Sequence record: MK568540.2
Reading direction: 5' to 3' (one strand)
DNA: 64,000 nt
Shown here piece after piece: positions 5,809 to 33,039 of this stretch. The notes beneath the pieces are model-generated. The model saw nothing but the letters and a program-made list of their open reading frames with translations, did no database searches and was not told where the DNA came from. The stretch's first letter is position 1. Every line of letters starts with the position of its first letter. The position numbers and the translations under genes were made by a program.

Positions 5809-6684
5809 ATGTTTAAGAAACTTGCAAAACTATTATCAGTATCTGCGCTAGGTCTAGCACTTGTAGGCTGTGGCACACCTGCTGAAATCCCAACGGGTTT
5901 CGTCGGTAAGATTCAAACGCCTAATGGCTTCAATTTAGAAGCAGAGCCGCGACAACCGTCTAAATTTCGTCTCGATTGGGCATGGCGCTACCCAGATCGT
6001 CTAGTACTTCTTGACGTATCTGACAGCTTCTACCAAATGAACTTCAACACGTTCATGCCAAAAGATGAGCTTATGCTTGCTTACTCAGTCGAAATGACAA
6101 TGGCGATTGACCCTGCGAAGTACAACTTCGTATTCGCTAAAGTACCGTTCCGAGCACAGACAGATCAGCTTGGTGTAATTGATCAGAAAGACGTGTTTAA
6201 ACGTTATGCGAAAGCTAAACTGAATACGATTGTACCTAGTATTGTAGCTGAATACAGCATCAAACAGGTTGCGTCTGAACGTCAAAAACTGAACTCGTTC
6301 GTTCTTAATCGCTTGAATCAAGAGCTGAAAGATACGCCGTTCGTTCTTAAAGTCGTAGGTGTTACTAACGTAGATTACCCTAAGACAATCACAGACGCAC
6401 AAATCAAATCTGCTGAACGTCGTCAAGAAGAAGACACAGTTAAAGCACAACGTAAGCTAGACTTGCTACAAATCACAACTCGTGAAGAAGTGTCAAAGCG
6501 TCAGCGTGAAATCGAACTGTACGAAGCTGAAACTAAAAAGCTAGTAGCTGACAAGCTGATGAACTCTAACGTTCGATTCATCGAAGAGCAAAAAACTCTA
6601 CGTGAGCTTGCGAAGTCGAATAACAAAGTGTTCGTACCAACGAAAATGCTTGATGATATCGCAGTACAAACACCAATCAAATAA
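5809..6684 (+). CDS. SPFH/Band-7 (prohibitin-like) lipoprotein
   Basis: Lipobox LALVGC, SPFH-like core (LKVVGVTNVDYPKTITDA), C-terminal coiled coil. Confidence 0.75.
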   Translation: MFKKLAKLLSVSALGLALVGCGTPAEIPTGFVGKIQTPNGFNLEAEPRQPSKFRLDWAWRYPDRLVLLDVSDSFYQMNFNTFMPKDELMLAYSVEMTMAIDPAKYNFVFAKVPFRAQTDQLGVIDQKDVFKRYAKAKLNTIVPSIVAEYSIKQVASERQKLNSFVLNRLNQELKDTPFVLKVVGVTNVDYPKTITDAQIKSAERRQEEDTVKAQRKLDLLQITTREEVSKRQREIELYEAETKKLVADKLMNSNVRFIEEQKTLRELAKSNNKVFVPTKMLDDIAVQTPIK

Positions 6685-6733
6685 TAACCACAAAGGGCAG
6701 TGAAACACTGCCCTCTCTTAAAAAGGAAACGTA

Positions 6734-7093
6734 ATGGAATTTCTTCTACCTGTTTTGCCAATTATTGGCATGTTTGTAATCTTACTTCTAATTCTAGCAG
6801 TGTCTTTCTTCATGGCGAAGATTTTCAAGCTAGACATCAAACTACCTTACGGTAAAATCATCACTGCTGCGCTTCTACTTACAGTTGCTGCGAGTGGTTT
6901 TAAAATTGCAACATCGCCAATTACTCGTCCTACAATGAACGAAGCAGTCAACGACACAGCCAAGTACAAAGTAGACGAATTTACTGAGCTTGAAGCACCT
7001 GTACTTGAAGACAAGTCATTCAAGGCTGAAGATGTTGATGTTACTACGCTAGACAGCGAAGAGCGTATCAAAAATCACACTAAGAACTTGTAA
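6734..7093 (+). CDS. Two-TM membrane protein, unknown function
   Basis: Two hydrophobic N-terminal segments; SD AAGGA. Confidence 0.7.
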   Translation: MEFLLPVLPIIGMFVILLLILAVSFFMAKIFKLDIKLPYGKIITAALLLTVAASGFKIATSPITRPTMNEAVNDTAKYKVDEFTELEAPVLEDKSFKAEDVDVTTLDSEERIKNHTKNL

Positions 7094-19721: not shown

Positions 19722-19739
19722 TATCGAGAGTACATTGGT

Positions 19740-19862
19740 CGAGTGTTGGTGTAGTGGCAGCACACGTAGCATACTGTAATCAGACATGATTATATTCAGC
19801 AACCAATTTACGCATATCATAGGGAGATCGTGGGAACGGTTCGATTCCGTTACACTCGACCA
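19740..19862 (+). ncRNA. tRNA-like RNA E1 with CAGCAA module inserted in the anticodon stem (loop ATAGGGA)
   Basis: Acceptor CGAGTGT/ACACTCG, D-arm, T-arm AACGG-TTCGATT-CCGTT, ACCA end; 49-nt insert after position 28; 21-bp leader/trailer duplex 19726-19872. Confidence 0.8.
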
Positions 19863-20121
19863 ATGTACTCTCACTAACAAAGCGAGGTGGACAATTTGAT
19901 TGTATATCTTCTCGCACTAGTATTCATCGTCCTTTTTGCCTTGGACATTGAAGAAGAAAAGGTGCGCATTCATACTTTTGCGCTAATCACATGCGAACGG
20001 GTCATTCATCCCGTAATTAAAGCGCACGATTCCAGATTGTGTTTTGATTAGCTAAGGCAAATATAACTAGAGGATTTTTGGTGCTTGTGGTTAATCACAA
20101 GCACTCTCAAGAACATATTGA

Positions 20122-20243
20122 GCAGGGTTGGTGTAGTGGCTAGCACACGTAGCATAAACGCAAGCTGTTAAGTTTGTATTCTGCAATCAATTTAGCATAT
20201 CATTTCCAAGATCGTGACGCAGGTTCGAATCCTGCACCCTGCT
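20122..20243 (+). ncRNA. tRNA-like RNA E2 with CTGCAA module (loop ATTTCCAA)
   Basis: Cloverleaf with insert after position 28; 17-bp extended acceptor duplex 20112-20252; no encoded CCA. Confidence 0.8.
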
Positions 20244-20260
20244 CAATATGTTTTTACATT

Positions 20261-20373
20261 GGTGAAGTTAGTTCAGTAGGTTAGAACGCCGGCCAAAAAA
20301 CGAAGTCTGATAAGATTTCATTCTGCATTCACATGCACGCCGGAGGTCGCAGGTTCGAGTCCTGCACTTCACC
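20261..20373 (+). ncRNA. tRNA-like RNA E3 with CTGCAT module in the anticodon loop
   Basis: GGTGAAGT/ACTTCACC acceptor, CCGGC/GCCGG anticodon stem, canonical T-arm. Confidence 0.8.
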
Positions 20374-20383
20374 TTCAAATTCT

Positions 20384-20508
20384 GGAGAGTTAGCTCAGTC
20401 TGGTAGAGCAAAAGAATGTTAAAGAATACTGACAAGCATTCATGCTGCAAACCTTAATAACTAGGTAAATCTTTTTGTCACGTGGTTCAAATCCCGTACT
20501 CTCCACCA
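20384..20508 (+). ncRNA. tRNA-like RNA E4 with CTGCAA module in the anticodon loop
   Basis: GGAGAGT/ACTCTCC-A-CCA, GCTC/GAGC D-stem, AAAGA/TCTTT anticodon stem. Confidence 0.8.
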
Positions 20509-22064: not shown

Positions 22065-22180
22065 AGTCGGGTAGCTCAGTGGTAGAGCACGAAGAATGAT
22101 ACTGACAAGTATCGCTCCAGCACTCCTTCAATTGCCTGTTAAGCACGTGGTCGCTGGTTCGAATCCAGCCCCGACTACCA
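22065..22180 (+). ncRNA. tRNA-Asn(GTT)-like RNA E5 with a 41-nt CAGCAC module inserted between positions 28 and 29
   Basis: Removing the insert restores CGTGC-CTGTTAA-GCACG; acceptor AGTCGGG/CCCGACT-A-CCA. Confidence 0.85.
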
Positions 22181-24046: not shown

Positions 24047-24051
24047 GTTTT

Positions 24052-24139
24052 AGCTTGCATACTGCAATTTAACTTAATCTATTGATCGCTCGGCGAACTC
24101 AGTTCAGACAGCGATAAACAGACCAAAGAACGCAAGCTG
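24052..24139 (+). ncRNA. Free-standing CTGCAA-motif RNA
   Basis: GCTTGC-ATA-CTGCAA ... GCAAGC-TG with inner ATCGCT/AGCGAT stem. Confidence 0.75.
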
Positions 24140-24763: not shown

Positions 24764-24837
24764 AGGGGCATGATGTAAAGGCAGCATGACGGATTCCAAA
24801 CCCGTTCGTTAGAGTTCGAATCTCTATGCCCCTGCCA
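24764..24837 (+). tRNA. tRNA-Trp (CCA)
   Basis: Loop TTCCAAA, G73-CCA. Confidence 0.88.
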
Positions 24838-24842
24838 GTTTA

Positions 24843-24901
24843 AGTAATCTTACAGCAAACAATACAAAACTTTTATTTGGAAAAAGCAAAAAGGATTACT
24901 G
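24843..24901 (+). ncRNA. Minimal CAGCAA-motif RNA carrying an anticodon-like stem-loop
   Basis: GTAATC-TTA-CAGCAA ... CTTTT-ATTTGGA-AAAAG ... GATTAC-TG. Confidence 0.8.
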
Positions 24902-24912
24902 TTTAAATTCAA

Positions 24913-24987
24913 GGGTGTGTAACTCAGAGGCAGAGTAGTCGGCTGTTAACCGACAAGTCGAGATTTCGAAATTCTCCACGCCCGCCA
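24913..24987 (+). tRNA. tRNA-Asn (GTT)
   Basis: Loop CTGTTAA, CCA. Confidence 0.88.
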
Positions 24988-25227: not shown

Positions 25228-25301
25228 TGGGGATTGGTGTAAAGGCAGCATAACGTACTTTGAATGCGTTGGTATCAGTTCGAATCTGTTATCCCCAGCC
25301 A
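25228..25301 (+). tRNA. tRNA-Gln (TTG)
   Basis: TGGGGAT start, loop CTTTGAA, CCA. Confidence 0.9.
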
Positions 25302-25310
25302 AATACCGAA

Positions 25311-25424
25311 GAGTGTTTTCAGCAAACAATTTACTAATATTCTTATCGGAAAGAAATGTTTAGGGTTCGATTCCCTTTCAGTGTTGGTATCACTGGTCTG
25401 GACGACGCTAGTAATAACACTCAG
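25311..25424 (+). ncRNA. Circularly permuted tRNA-like RNA closed by the CAGCAA motif (YrlA-like topology)
   Basis: Order: GAGTGT-TTT-CAGCAA, anticodon-like hairpin, T-arm AGGG-TTCGATT-CCCT, closed acceptor CAGTG/CACTG, D-like hairpin, ACACTC-AG. Confidence 0.8.
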
Positions 25425-25745: not shown

Positions 25746-25820
25746 GGGCCGTTAGCTTAATTGGGAAAGCGCCTCACTTGCAATGAGGAAGATAGGGTTC
25801 GACTCCCTGCGTGTCCACCA
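25746..25820 (+). tRNA. tRNA-Ala (TGC)
   Basis: Loop CTTGCAA; irregular acceptor/T stems; CCA. Confidence 0.8.
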
Positions 25821-25970: not shown

Positions 25971-26033
25971 TATTAAGCTCTTATCATGCGACGAATGATA
26001 CTTTGCTTCGGCATATCACGAGCATGGTGAGAG

Positions 26034-26262
26034 AGACAATATACAGCAAACAATTGAAATTACTTAAAAGAAGTGATGATCTTAACCTGGGCTGATTTTA
26101 ACCTGAGCTTGCTTAGGCGCAGCTTGAAAGGAAAGATTCTCTCTGTCTAGAAATAGTCAGATAGGCGCGTCGCTGAAACAGACGATATTTGCTTGTTGAG
26201 AATCAATAAGCTAGTCAACTCCGATTTATGCAAAAGACGAAAAAACACTTCGGTATTGTCTG
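26034..26262 (+). ncRNA. Large CAGCAA-motif RNA L1
   Basis: GACAAT-ATA-CAGCAA ... ATTGTC-TG; several hairpins; 3' block shared with L2. Confidence 0.8.
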
Positions 26263-26266
26263 TACT

Positions 26267-26485
26267 TAATTCGTCGGAAACGACACTGTAGCCGAAAGGC
26301 AAGATACGCTAACTTAGATGTTAGCAGCGATATAGGATGTATCGCGTGGCATTATTATGAACGTTTCTAGTCATCGTCATGTAAAACAATCAAAACTAAG
26401 CAGAGGTAACAGTACCCACTATGTGGTTCCTCACTCAGACCATGAATATATGGTGTCAGCCAGTGTGCGATTAAATGAGTTAATT
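26267..26485 (+). ncRNA. Orphan multi-hairpin RNA with GNRA loops
   Basis: GTCG-GAAA-CGAC, GCC-GAAA-GGC, GCTAAC/GTTAGC, GCGATA/TATCGC, ACCAT/ATGGT. Confidence 0.55.
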
Positions 26486-26494
26486 ACTGCAATT

Positions 26495-26570
26495 GGTGAT
26501 GTAGCTCAAGTGGCAGAGCAACGCTTTCATACGGCGTAAGATCCGATTTCGAGTATCGGTGTCACCTCCA
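26495..26570 (+). tRNA. tRNA-Met (CAT)
   Basis: Loop TTCATAC, T73-CCA. Confidence 0.85.
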
Positions 26571-26759
26571 AATTCAAAAACAAAGAGGTTACGAAGCATG
26601 ACTACTTTACACTAAGCAAGGGCAACATACGCGATAAAATTCGATATGTTGAAAAATGTCTCGCGAATGAGACCAACCCGTTCTTTATAAGAACACTTAC
26701 TGTAGAGCTTACGAATCTACGTGCAATACGTGATTTGTTTGACGCTTCAGATTAACAAT

Positions 26760-27994: not shown

Positions 27995-27999
27995 AATTC

Positions 28000-28260
28000 G
28001 CAATAAGACATTGTACAGCAATCATTACAAAATCAAAGCAAACTTTAATAGTAATGAGGCGCACTAGCTGCTTTCTCAGTGATGACGTGAGCCTGTCGCA
28101 TTCTCATGGTAGGAAATGACCATTAAGACGGTGTTCGTACTGTCAAACGAAATAGGACTCATGCCGAATCATGAGTATTTTTCCGATGAGAAACATCGTT
28201 ATAGTCAATTGAGATTTAAGGAAAGACGATAAAACATTTCTCGAATGTCTGTGTATTGCA
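28000..28260 (+). ncRNA. Large CAGCAA-motif RNA L2
   Basis: GACATT-GTA-CAGCAA ... AATGTC-TG, outer GCAATA/TATTGC stem, many hairpins, 3' block shared with L1. Confidence 0.8.
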
Positions 28261-28266
28261 CATTAG

Positions 28267-28290
28267 AACCTGCCTTGAGCAGGTTTTTTT
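28267..28290 (+). terminator. Terminator ending the RNA island
   Basis: AACCTGC-CTTGA-GCAGGTT followed by a T-run. Confidence 0.85.
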
Positions 28291-30951: not shown

Positions 30952-30980
30952 GTTTACATGCATTAAAATTCGCGTATAAT
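30952..30980 (+). promoter_or_regulatory. T4-type early promoter of the DUF2828 gene
   Basis: AAAAAAGT-GTTTAC-N17-TATAAT. Confidence 0.8.
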
Positions 30981-30992
30981 CACTTCATCAAA

Positions 30993-31035
30993 GACATTTT
31001 ACAGCAATTAATTATGAGGAAATGAACAATGTCAG
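30993..31035 (+). promoter_or_regulatory. CAGCAA motif enclosing the SD and pairing with the start codon of the DUF2828 gene
   Basis: GACATT-TTA-CAGCAA-...GAGG...-AATGTC-AG; the ATG at 31029 lies in the 3' strand. Confidence 0.85.
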
Positions 31036-32465
31036 TATTTATGAACGCAATGCAAACAAACGATTCACGCACAGCAAACGGTGCAGTTACTCACAGCACT
31101 TCAGGTAACGAGTGTCTAAACTTGTTCTTCGGTATTGCTGCTATGCGTGGCAACGATCAGTCTAAAACACTGTTCGGTCGTGCGTTTGCAGAAAACCCAG
31201 AACTAGCGACTCGCATTCTTTTGTGGTCTCGTGATGTTCGAGGTGGTGCGGGTGAACGTGGTACTTTCCGTACTCTATTCACTAAACTTTGTAATGAACA
31301 GCCTGACGTAGCTCGTGCTGTAATGTCGAAAATTCCAGAACTAGGTCGTTACGATGACTTGATTTCTGCTTTCGGTACACGTCTTGAAAAAGATGCGATT
31401 ACAATGTGGTCGAACGCAATTGTCAATGACAAGAATGGTCTTGCTGCGAAGTGGTTCCCACGTGAAAACAGCAAAAACGGTCATGTGTTCAAGCGCACAA
31501 TCAAGTCTCTTGGCGTAACTGCGAAGCAGTGGCGTAAGATTCTGTCGCTTCTGTCTGACACTGTTGAGCAGAAGATGTGTGCGCAAAAATGGGATGCAAT
31601 CGACTTCGGTAAGTTGCCTTCTGTAGCGTCTGCTCGTTATCAACAAGCATTCGGTCGTAACGCTTCAACACGTTACACAAACTACATCGAGTCACTTCAA
31701 AAAGGTGAAGCGAAGATCAACGCTGGCGCATTGTTCCCATACGATGTCGTTAAGAGCGTTAGTCACGGTAATGCGTCTGTAGCGAACGAGCAATGGAAAG
31801 CTCTGCCAAACTACATGGAAGGTTCTGATGAACGCATCATCCCTGTTGTTGACGTGTCTGGCTCTATGAGCACGCCAATTAACGCAGGTACAGACCGTTC
31901 AGGTGTGACTTGTAAGCAAGTTGCAATGTCTCTTGGGATTTATGTTGCTGAACGCAATGAAGGCATCTTCAAAGATCAGTTCATTTCGTTCTCAAGCGAC
32001 CCGCACTTCCACCAGTTGCGCGGCTCTTCATTGAAAGAGCGTCTTGATAACATGAATCGTTCAGGCGAAGACATGAGTACGAACATCGGTAAGTGCTTTG
32101 ATGTTCTGCTAGAGCGTGCGAAGCGTGCAAATCTTTCACAAGAAGATATGCCAACCAAGTTGCTTATCATGAGTGACATGGAATTCGATCAAGCAAACAC
32201 TGGTGGTGGTTGGTACGGTCGCGGTGAACCTGCGAACTTCGATGCAATCAAAGCCAAGTACGCACGTGCTGGTTATGAAATGCCACAACTGGTCTTCTGG
32301 AACATTCGTGGTCGTCTTGGCAACGTTCCGGTTAAAGCTGGTGAAGCGGGTACTGCACTGGTATCTGGTTGTAGCCCATCTATCTTGACTTCACTGTTGG
32401 GTGGTGAGCTTGAGCCAATCAAGATCATGATGAAAACTGTAGGCGTCGAACGCTACAGCTTTTAA
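31029..32465 (+). CDS. DUF2828-type TROVE/Ro60-like protein with C-terminal vWA domain
   Basis: T.NGA..HSTSG..CL.LF, RDVRGGAGER, IPELGRYDDL, AKWFPR; vWA MIDAS DVSGSM, ST, LIMSDMEFD, VFWN. Confidence 0.8.
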   Translation: MSVFMNAMQTNDSRTANGAVTHSTSGNECLNLFFGIAAMRGNDQSKTLFGRAFAENPELATRILLWSRDVRGGAGERGTFRTLFTKLCNEQPDVARAVMSKIPELGRYDDLISAFGTRLEKDAITMWSNAIVNDKNGLAAKWFPRENSKNGHVFKRTIKSLGVTAKQWRKILSLLSDTVEQKMCAQKWDAIDFGKLPSVASARYQQAFGRNASTRYTNYIESLQKGEAKINAGALFPYDVVKSVSHGNASVANEQWKALPNYMEGSDERIIPVVDVSGSMSTPINAGTDRSGVTCKQVAMSLGIYVAERNEGIFKDQFISFSSDPHFHQLRGSSLKERLDNMNRSGEDMSTNIGKCFDVLLERAKRANLSQEDMPTKLLIMSDMEFDQANTGGGWYGRGEPANFDAIKAKYARAGYEMPQLVFWNIRGRLGNVPVKAGEAGTALVSGCSPSILTSLLGGELEPIKIMMKTVGVERYSF

Positions 32466-32474
32466 ATAAGTGAT

Positions 32475-32501
32475 AAGGGCGGCATTGTGCTGCCCTTTTT
32501 T
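32475..32501 (+). terminator. Terminator after the DUF2828 gene
   Basis: AAGGGCGGCA/TGCTGCCCTT followed by a T-run. Confidence 0.75.
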
Positions 32502-32514
32502 GTAAGAGGTGAAA

Positions 32515-33039
32515 ATGTTCGATTGGGAAGCGATAGAAACAGCTATCAATAACAGTCATCCAAATAGCACAATATACGTTGGGTGTGATAGTAAGCGTAA
32601 AAGTGACATGATTAGTTACGCGACTGTGATCATAATTCATCTTGAAGGTAGTAAAGGTGCTCAAGTGTTTAAAGCAGTTGAGACTGAACCTGCATACTTA
32701 TCATGTAAAGATGGTATCAGAAGTCGATTGATGAATGAAGTATACAAAGCGGGTGAAACTGCACTAATGGTTAAGCCAATGTGCGGTACTAGAGGCTTTG
32801 AAGTTCACGTTGACATCAACCCTGACCCCACACACAAATCTCACGTTGCTTATAACGAAGCTAAAGGCACGATCTTGGGATATGTTGGTCAAGAGCCCGT
32901 GTTCAAACCTGATGCGTTTGCTGCGTCTTGTGCTGCTGATTATGACGCAGTTCGAAGAGCAGATAAAATCGCTAAACGAAAAGAACTTAGACGGGCTAAA
33001 CGAAAAGCAAAGAAACAAAAAACAAAAGGGCGCAAATAG
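32515..33039 (+). CDS. RNase H-like YkuK (DUF458)-family protein
   Basis: IYVGCDS, RLMNEV, EVHVDINPD..HKS, KPDAFAAS.AAD. Confidence 0.8.
   Translation: MFDWEAIETAINNSHPNSTIYVGCDSKRKSDMISYATVIIIHLEGSKGAQVFKAVETEPAYLSCKDGIRSRLMNEVYKAGETALMVKPMCGTRGFEVHVDINPDPTHKSHVAYNEAKGTILGYVGQEPVFKPDAFAASCAADYDAVRRADKIAKRKELRRAKRKAKKQKTKGRK

Follow-up and report, generated by a model that had tools for sequence, protein, structure and literature searches.

A 59-nt element between tRNA genes of Vibrio phage Va3, most likely a minimal member of a Y-RNA-like phage family paired with a divergent Ro60-like protein

Y RNAs are the small RNA partners of the ring protein Ro60, which they bind via a stem and a motif in its 5' strand. 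They are encoded within 4 kb of the Ro60 gene on the same strand and mimic tRNA, the bacterial Y RNAs carrying a tRNA-like module (PMC4201824). The Ro60 of one phage binds the host PNPase as well as two Y-like RNAs encoded upstream of it (PMC12135203), and Ro/TROVE has been placed among the RNA-repair functions of phages (PMC7824862). Another group of small RNAs, the Class I RNAs of Dictyostelium, are about 60 nt long, start with AAG, end with CUGU and possess a terminal stem that is short and covaries, a box of 11 unstructured nt (CCUUACAGCAA) adjoining the 5' strand of the stem and a variable interior. They have been reported to be unique to Dictyostelia (PMC7919456), and their function has been without an assignment since 2004. 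In the tRNA clusters of T4-type phages, the stable RNAs species 1 and 2 (rnaC and rnaD) are non-tRNA products without a known function.

The 64,000-nt window analyzed here, that is, the whole stretch of DNA under study, is from Vibrio phage Va3, a KVP40-like phage of the T4 type. Within a cluster of at least 28 tRNA genes, the window contains a 59-nt element (positions 24843-24901) that is built from a terminal helix (P1), a single-stranded box and a weak inner hairpin (Table 1). The element is a member of a widespread, previously undescribed family of small phage RNAs. Its best-supported identity, and the most likely one, is that of a minimal member of a new, widespread Y-RNA-like family paired with a divergent Ro60-like protein.

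The phage RNAs resemble the Y RNAs and YrlA of Ro60 (Rsr) and the Yrl1 and Yrl2 RNAs of the phiLo Ro60 in the stem formed by their 5' and 3' ends, in a motif on the 5' side and in their frequent occurrence in multiple copies. At the level of the family they are also encoded beside a ring protein on the same strand, with a predicted HEAT-repeat ring and a vWA/MIDAS domain, as Y RNAs are. Like YrlA, the family carries a variable tRNA-mimic module; that of YrlA is a permuted T-arm, acceptor and D-arm, which resembles the family's third type of cargo. In contrast to the Ro60-binding site (GNCGAAN0-1G or GGUCCGA), the phage box ACAGCAA contains no CGAA. The phage copies also differ in being embedded in tRNA arrays and in having cargo that can be as small as a single hairpin. 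The 59-nt element itself lacks the T/D-arm module of YrlA, whereas its paralogs E1, E1b and E2 and many relatives possess one. The Rfam YrlA model (RF02553) does not match the element, and the permuted-tRNA relatives reach 27-37 bits against a gathering threshold of 69.

The element also resembles the Class I RNAs. All of the features by which these are defined in PMC7919456 are present in the element and in the phage consensus, and the Class I box agrees with that of the element (CUUACAGCAA) at 10 of 11 nt in the same position. The Class I model (Dicty_Class_I_RNA, RF01414) was the only Rfam match of the element (31.8 bits, E 1e-4 locally, gathering threshold 41.5); other phage members scored 36.9, 29.1 and 24.2 bits, all below that threshold, and Rfam 15 has no family model for these phage RNAs. 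Unlike the phage element, which lies in a vibriophage tRNA operon, Class I RNAs are Pol III-type amoeba genes with an upstream DUSE promoter, and their known direct binder is an RRM protein (Rnp1A/CIBP). The T4 RNAs are similar in their setting, and rnaC has a T-arm at its end, but neither rnaC nor rnaD has the P1 and ACAGCAA module in the same arrangement. Homology to them was rejected because this shared module is absent. T4 did not appear among the phages that were noticed here as carriers of the gene for the Ro60-like (DUF2828) protein.

Anatomy and conservation of the 59-nt element

The sequence is as the original prediction had described it, with a motif helix between tRNA-Trp and tRNA-Asn that encloses a small stem-loop, and the element is indeed a minimal form, being the shortest copy in this vibriophage of a real RNA family. 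The reading of the stem-loop as a 5-bp stem and a 7-nt loop with a UUG triplet and a purine at position 37 stood in part. These features are present in Va3, but the loop varies among relatives and the stem, in which all pairs are A-U except for the closing C-G, is outside the MFE fold (RNAfold). In that fold the outer P1 helix is present and a CAAA/UUUG pairing takes the place of the proposed CUUUU/AAAAG stem. The fold has an energy of -8.0 kcal/mol (z = -2.28), and 5 of 200 shuffles were equally good. By fold energy alone there is nothing remarkable about the element; it is by comparison with its relatives that it stands beyond chance. No sigma-70 promoter or terminator was found within positions 24843-24901, and the window is without any reverse-complement copy of the box that would be an antisense partner.

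An orthologous element follows tRNA-Trp in nine related vibriophages (KVP40, V05, phi-ST2, nt-1, CZ01, D484, D482, D491s and F86), and P1, the box and a U-run/A-run hairpin are kept in all of them. The core of the box (CWGCAAACAA) is invariant in the nine orthologs, the whole box of the more distant ones being AUUCUGCAA. P1 of KVP40 and V05 (AGCAAUC/GAUUGCU) carries one compensatory change, from U-A to C-G. The hairpin loop is AUUUGGA in Va3, phi-ST2, KVP40 and V05, AUUUUAA in nt-1, AUUUUGA in CZ01 and an 8-nt loop (AUUUGAAG) in D484, D482 and D491s. The hairpin of F86 is U9-AUUUG-A8, and the closing C-G pair is changed to U-A in the D48x phages and F86. With the orthologs aligned, RNAalifold predicted only P1. 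Since P1 and the box are invariant or compensated while the loop is variable, the helix plus box is the selected part and the "Gln anticodon" is not. Covariation of the stem-loop in homologs had been proposed as a check of the prediction. A compensatory change was found in P1, whereas the inner stem-loop has no consensus and both the UUG triplet and the 7-nt size vary. Homologs that keep the motif without the 7-nt loop had been named in advance as evidence against the prediction, and with the Gln-like loop unconserved this is in part what the orthologs show.

In KVP40, V07, V09 and phi-pp2, a 65-aa ORF (KVP40.0314; 6585-6779 in the KVP40 contig L001) is inserted between tRNA-Trp and the element. 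The insertion is on the tRNA-Trp side, and the element thus travels with the tRNA-Asn side of the spacer.

Table 1. The 59-nt element, its paralogs and the Ro60-like protein gene in the 64,000-nt window of Vibrio phage Va3
Feature	Position	Strand	Remarks
tRNA-like RNA E1	19726-19872	+	hairpin AUAGGGA, T-arm, D-arm, box UUCAGCAACCAAU
tRNA-like RNA E1b	20112-20252	+	design as E1; box UUCUGCAAUCAAU
Paralog between tRNA-Tyr and tRNA-Met	24051-24139	+	P1 UAGCUUGC/GCAAGCUG; box AUACUGCAAUUUAAC; CM R1 25.2 bits, E 0.002
tRNA-Trp	24764-24837	+	upstream flank of the 59-nt element
AAG start of 59-nt element	24842-24844	+	overlaps P1 5' strand
P1 5' strand, AGUAAUC	24843-24849	+	7-bp terminal helix; from sequence, fold, orthologs
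Single-stranded box, UU-ACAGCAAACAAU	24850-24863	+	ACAGCAAACAAU itself 24852-24863; family signature ACAGCAA
Spacer, ACAAAA		+	between box and weak hairpin
Weak hairpin, CUUUU/AUUUGGA/AAAAG	24870-24886	+	variable "cargo" module
A-rich 3' linker, CAAAAAG	24887-24893	+	such a linker before P1' is common in short-form members
P1 3' strand, GAUUACU	24894-24900	+	pairs with AGUAAUC
CUGU end of 59-nt element	24899-24902	+	
tRNA-Asn	24913-24987	+	downstream flank of the 59-nt element
Paralog E2	25311-25423	+	P1 GAGUGUU/AACACUC; box UUCAGCAAACAAU; CM 16.0 bits (25311-25422)
Probable paralog E3	26030-26146	+	P1 AGAGAGA/UCUCUCU; box ACAGCAAACAAU; CUGU end
Long-form paralog, about 250 nt	28005-28252	+	P1 AAGACAUU/AAUGUCU(G); box GUACAGCAAUCAUUAC; CUGU end
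Mini element, GACAUU-UU-ACAGCAAUU...GAGG...-AAUGUC	30993-31033	+	5' UTR of Ro60-like gene; CM 11.8 bits (30985-31040)
Ro60-like protein gene, 478 aa	31029-32465	+	DUF2828 + DUF7788/vWA with MIDAS; terminator 32475-32497

The wider RNA family and its cargo

A first scan of viral contigs used an 18-nt degenerate pattern and returned mostly chance matches inside ORFs. One true match lay in a 371-kb phage contig (L033) with four neighboring elements, all of which combine the box with a terminal helix, a T-arm and a U/A hairpin; two of the four are behind TTG...TGGTATAAT promoters. Because a loose motif-plus-helix script produced many false positives, stricter rules and a covariance model (CM) took its place. 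The second scan, for the box and then a T-loop, identified 103 loci in diverse large phages. Members of the family share an AAG or UAGG start, a covarying P1, the ACAGCAA box, a tRNA-derived cargo, an A-rich linker, the 3' strand of P1 (P1') and a CUGU end. Most of the loci have the layout (U)UUUAGG-P1-NN-(A)CAGCAAAC...cargo...A-rich linker-P1'-CCUGUU, and tandem copies are frequent. The consensus termini are UAGG...CCUGUU and the consensus of the box is ACAGCAA(A/U)C, the box being the most conserved block in a 56-sequence alignment of the family.

The terminal helix was assessed in 84 instances of a box with a T-arm, selected blind to P1. In 70% of these instances, compared to 15.8% of random positions, a helix that is 7 bp or longer begins 1-4 nt 5' of the box; for a helix of 8 bp or longer the figures are 44% and 5.4%. 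In the alignment of 56 short forms, 91% of the P1 cells pair, 103 cells have both partners changed and covariation scores 0.633 versus 0.150 when shuffled and at most 0.087 with the partner slid, although these statistics are partly circular since the members were picked by P1 pairing. A U.G pair at the base of P1 is frequent and conserved in this alignment and fits the transcribed (+) strand only. CM R1, built from the 56 short forms, gave 140 matches at E<=0.01 in 977 kb of phage contigs; the 59-nt element scored 71.7 bits as a seed member. All copies are on the strand of the tRNAs and the Ro60-like gene, and some have their own sigma-70-type promoters.

The cargo takes several forms. It may be a hairpin and a T-arm, a tRNA body that has its D-arm, anticodon arm and T-arm but lacks the acceptor stem, or a circularly permuted tRNA (anticodon arm, T-arm, loop-closed acceptor and D-arm). 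In about 100 cases it is only one or two hairpins. These short forms of 55-75 nt are the commonest class, and near-identical designs with different P1 sequences occur in unrelated phages; the hairpin type of the 59-nt element is also found in the unrelated phages L139, L204 and L209. Anticodon-type 7-nt loops are about 9-fold enriched in the cargo relative to shuffled cargo. The recurrent loops have covarying stems and are CUUUUAA (Lys-UUU), which is the most frequent, followed by CUUGUAA, CUUGAAA and CUGAAAA. Because such loops recur, a tRNA-derived module on a constant handle is a fair description of the family. On two of the contigs with family members, other structured RNAs were seen: a circularly permuted tmRNA (RF04321, 120 bits) at 8566-9274 of L185, which has several members, and a group I intron (RF00028, 59 bits) at 3462-3704 of L133, a tRNA-array contig with four short-form elements.

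In the Va3 window, the box is repeated exactly at positions 25320 and 26044 and in variant form at 19797, 20181, 28015 and 31001. The cargo of E2, which has orthologs in KVP40 and VH7D, is a hairpin, a T-arm and a second hairpin with a 7-nt loop. E3 was not recovered by the CM at E<=10. The long-form paralog closes the tRNA cluster and is followed by a terminator (28265-28287); its 5' part (27998-28101) is matched by the CM at 16.1 bits. E1 and E1b represent the opposite circular permutation of the family, with an open acceptor and with P1 as a closed hairpin. E1 has a 20-bp acceptor-like helix, and its closed P1 is GUAAUC..GAUUAU; in both RNAs the P1 hairpin and the box are inserted between the D-arm and the next hairpin, and the closed P1 sequence nearly equals P1 of the 59-nt element. 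Both RNAs are unannotated, their helix of about 20 bp extends the acceptor stem, and the KVP40 annotation has a hypothetical ORF there.

The cluster also contains three tRNA-like genes of 112-122 nt (20262-20373, 20384-20505 and 22065-22177) that the Rfam tRNA model matches end to end. Their anticodon loops are expanded by inserts of about 45 nt, and KVP40 names them tRNA-Pseudo-5, -4 and -3. In at least one of the inserts, the box-like variant GCAAAC comes directly after a small closed hairpin. A tRNA at 25746-25817 is matched by the Rfam model (44.9 bits) and missed by ARAGORN, and its KVP40 counterpart is tRNA-Pseudo-1.

The Ro60-like protein encoded beside the RNAs

In the phage contig L184, seven elements form an array that extends to the ribosome-binding site of an ORF of 477 aa with DUF2828 and DUF7788 domains. 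The Va3 window encodes a homolog (41% identity, E 5e-107) 6.1 kb downstream of the 59-nt element on the same strand, with the long-form paralog and the mini element closer to it. DUF2828 homologs are present in 711 of 50,697 phage records, where they are annotated as "Ro-like RNA binding protein", "RNA-binding protein", "vWFA protein" or "DUF2828", and metagenomic matches to the protein number at least 7,933. A homolog was found in at least 40 of about 100 RNA-bearing loci (up to 15 kb each). In about 27 of 31 distinct loci, one to five elements are immediately upstream of the gene on the same strand. When loci were chosen by protein similarity alone, seven of eight new loci had CM matches beside the gene. 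These matches include Synechococcus phage BUCT-ZZ01 (57.4 bits), Staphylococcus phage S-CoN_Ph2 (40.6, 26.6 and 25.6 bits), Bacillus phage MrDarsey (33.8 bits), Enterococcus phage EFDG1 (33.7 bits), Escherichia phage HY02 (33.5, 25.7 and 22.8 bits) and Campylobacter phage PC14 (26.8 bits). The locus of Listeria phage P100 gave a further match of 41.9 bits to a copy outside the seed. Among the loci fetched with the protein, that of Sinorhizobium phage phiM7 had no CM match and that of a mycobacteriophage had only a weak one. The constant handle of the family thus travels with the Ro60-like protein gene, which is the strongest evidence for the reading as a Y-RNA-like partner.

The protein differs from Ro60 in sequence: Pfam assigns DUF2828 and DUF7788 and makes no TROVE call, and a sequence search of the PDB returned no match. 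The MIDAS motif (DxSxS...T...D) is invariant in an alignment of 21 sequences. The AlphaFold2 model (pLDDT 80.2, pTM 0.77) was compared with the PDB by Foldseek, and the best 11 matches were all Ro60/TROVE proteins (Thermus phage phiLo, Xenopus and human) with E 7e-9 to 8e-6, TM 0.5-0.62 and 507-577 columns at 10-17% identity. The matches that rank after them are isolated vWA domains. By its predicted fold only, the protein has a Ro60-like architecture with a HEAT-repeat ring and a vWA/MIDAS domain. The next gene past the terminator of the Ro60-like gene (32509-33036) has a Pfam RNaseH_like match (PF04308, E 4e-17), and its product could be a nuclease partner of an RNP.

The mini element lies between the Ro60-like ORF and the best sigma-70-type promoter of the region, a strong one at 30953-30980. 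It encloses the Shine-Dalgarno sequence and has the start codon within its 3' strand, and its design is identical in KVP40 and VH7D. This suggests that it is an autoregulatory operator of the Ro60-like gene acting through the same binding site, and its position around the Shine-Dalgarno sequence and start codon fits the box and P1 as the binding site of the Ro60-like protein.

Three elements with P1 and the box are directly upstream of the gene in P100, behind a consensus promoter. Listeria phage CKA15, a relative of P100, encodes a homologous protein with an HHpred match to Rsr (PMC12282133). This protein (CKA15_055, DUF2828 Ro60-like) was detected in purified virions at 57% coverage (PMC12282133), and it may therefore be delivered with the genome. 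Highly abundant non-coding transcripts were found less than 2 kb upstream of the gene, and the authors guessed that these are Y RNAs; the region 26,236-26,727 was reported to take up to 67% of phage transcripts (PMC12282133). This top-expressed region maps upstream of the P1 elements and not onto them. Its counterpart in P100 (about 3487-3978 of contig L224) is non-coding, lies behind a consensus promoter and is without a P1-and-box element.

Alternative explanations and proposed mode of action

The original prediction proposed that the element is an anticodon decoy, in which the Gln-like stem-loop soaks up a host anticodon nuclease or another toxin or enzyme that binds anticodon loops while P1 and the box merely stabilize it. 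The AUUUGGA loop with U at position 2 and a purine at position 6, beneath a 7-bp "acceptor-like" helix, does resemble an anticodon stem-loop or armless tRNA; the UUUG core is kept in seven of the nine orthologs, and the tRNA-Gln of Va3 itself (25228-25301) has the loop CUUUGAA. However, the triplet is UUU in nt-1 and CZ01, the loop is 8 nt in the D48x phages, close analogs in other phages have 6-nt loops (AUUUGA and AUUGGA), and the inner stem is seen neither in the RNAalifold consensus nor in the MFE fold. The element also differs from a tRNA in having no T-arm, D-arm or CCA and no conserved loop, and neither ARAGORN nor the tRNA covariance model called it. P1 and the box, which are the invariant parts, would be needless for a bare decoy, many family members carry no anticodon arm, and this analysis gave no link to PrrC, RloC, VapC or PARIS. 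As an account of this RNA the decoy is therefore improbable. The part of the idea that stands concerns the family, whose cargo has textbook anticodon stem-loops and is rich in canonical anticodon loops, most often Lys-UUU. The Lys-UUU tRNA is the target of PrrC and PARIS. Bacterial Ro60/Y-RNA loci have in turn been tied to tRNA damage and repair (PMC7824862, PMC7790460). The enrichment of anticodon loops in the cargo keeps a role at tRNA-directed conflicts attractive for the family, and a decoy role could coexist with a role as Ro60 partner. A CsrA-type sponge with a GGA loop was rejected because the GG is lost in nt-1, CZ01, the D48x phages and F86.

It is unlikely that the element is an inert leftover, either a decayed form of a longer tRNA-like or Y-like element or a spacer hairpin that aids processing of the tRNA precursor and has no function itself. 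Of the copies it is the shortest, the T-arm, D-arm and acceptor of paralogs are missing from it, its fold energy is modest, processing alone would free it from its position in a tRNA spacer, and the ORF inserted in KVP40 indicates that the spacer is plastic. The minimal copy could be a decaying relic, which is a point against the Y-RNA-like reading. An inert sequence is at odds with the compensatory change and the persistence of P1, the box and the hairpin in Schizotequatrovirus, in the nt-1 and D48x groups and in F86, and with the prevalence of the short forms and the recurrence of their design in unrelated phages. Less probable still is a role at the level of DNA or as a mobile element, in which tRNA modules would be shuffled by recombination or endonuclease action at the inverted repeat and box. 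Such a site would explain the permuted and partial tRNA cargos; tandem arrays share junctions (CCUGUU-N-GUUUUAGG), the cargos are circular permutations and fragments of tRNAs, and homing endonuclease genes are common in these clusters. It is opposed by the conserved U.G at the base of P1, which would be C.A on the opposite strand, by the single-stranded, strand-specific box, by the location of every copy on the strand of the tRNAs and protein gene and by the promoters that some copies possess. A tmRNA-like tag (GCA AAC...) was rejected because reading frames are unconserved between relatives, and CRISPR-like or integron attC-like repeats were rejected because the units vary in size, are strand-specific and in some cases have their own promoters.

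We consider it probable that positions 24843-24901 are the gene of a small RNA, about 60 nt long, that docks the phage Ro60-like protein and is the minimal representative of a multi-copy Y-RNA-like family. The element would be transcribed inside a polycistronic tRNA precursor, being on the same strand as its neighbors and without an internal promoter or terminator. Cleavage by RNase P where tRNA-Asn begins, together with maturation of the 3' end of tRNA-Trp, would release an RNA that may then be trimmed back to P1 and held closed by it. The constant module, which is bounded by AAG and CUGU and consists of P1 and the single-stranded ACAGCAA box just 3' of the first strand of P1, would dock to the Ro60-like ring protein in the manner of the stem and 5'-strand motif of Y RNAs, as genomic linkage and fold suggest. 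In paralogs, a T-arm, an anticodon arm or the entire body of a permuted tRNA makes up the variable module; here it is one weak U/A hairpin, possibly the degenerate end of a series of tRNA-derived effectors. With its cargo reduced in this way, the copy is probably a plain ligand, gate or titrator and not an adaptor. By analogy with Ro60 and Y RNAs, one may speculate that during infection the RNP takes part in the surveillance of RNA or in tRNA metabolism, with gating of the ring or tethering of a host exoribonuclease as examples of how it might act.

The relationship to the Class I RNAs can be taken further only tentatively. In a pull-down that used DdR-21, a Class I RNA, the uncharacterized DDB_G0281243 was one of four proteins (bioRxiv 10.1101/2020.04.05.026054), and the DUF2828-type family is mentioned in plants too in the literature. 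It is conceivable, if rather doubtful, that Class I RNAs are a eukaryotic branch of the phage family, that both are ligands of DUF2828-type proteins with DDB_G0281243 as the amoeba protein, and that the phage system is a "handle plus tRNA piece" RNP for tRNAs that are damaged or targeted in the course of infection.

In the tRNA clusters of phages, the family accounts for some of the "spacers" and "pseudo-tRNAs" that are left unannotated, and its design is modular, with one constant handle and a cargo that ranges from a single hairpin to a permuted tRNA. It provides DUF2828, whose carriers include such well-used phages as KVP40-like, Felix O1-like, P100/A511-like, staphylococcal, enterococcal and campylobacter phages, with a candidate RNA partner and hence a testable function, and it offers a concrete lead on the Class I RNAs of Dictyostelium. 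If the cargo addresses tRNA-directed host defenses, these RNAs and their protein would add an RNA-protein layer to phage counter-defense.
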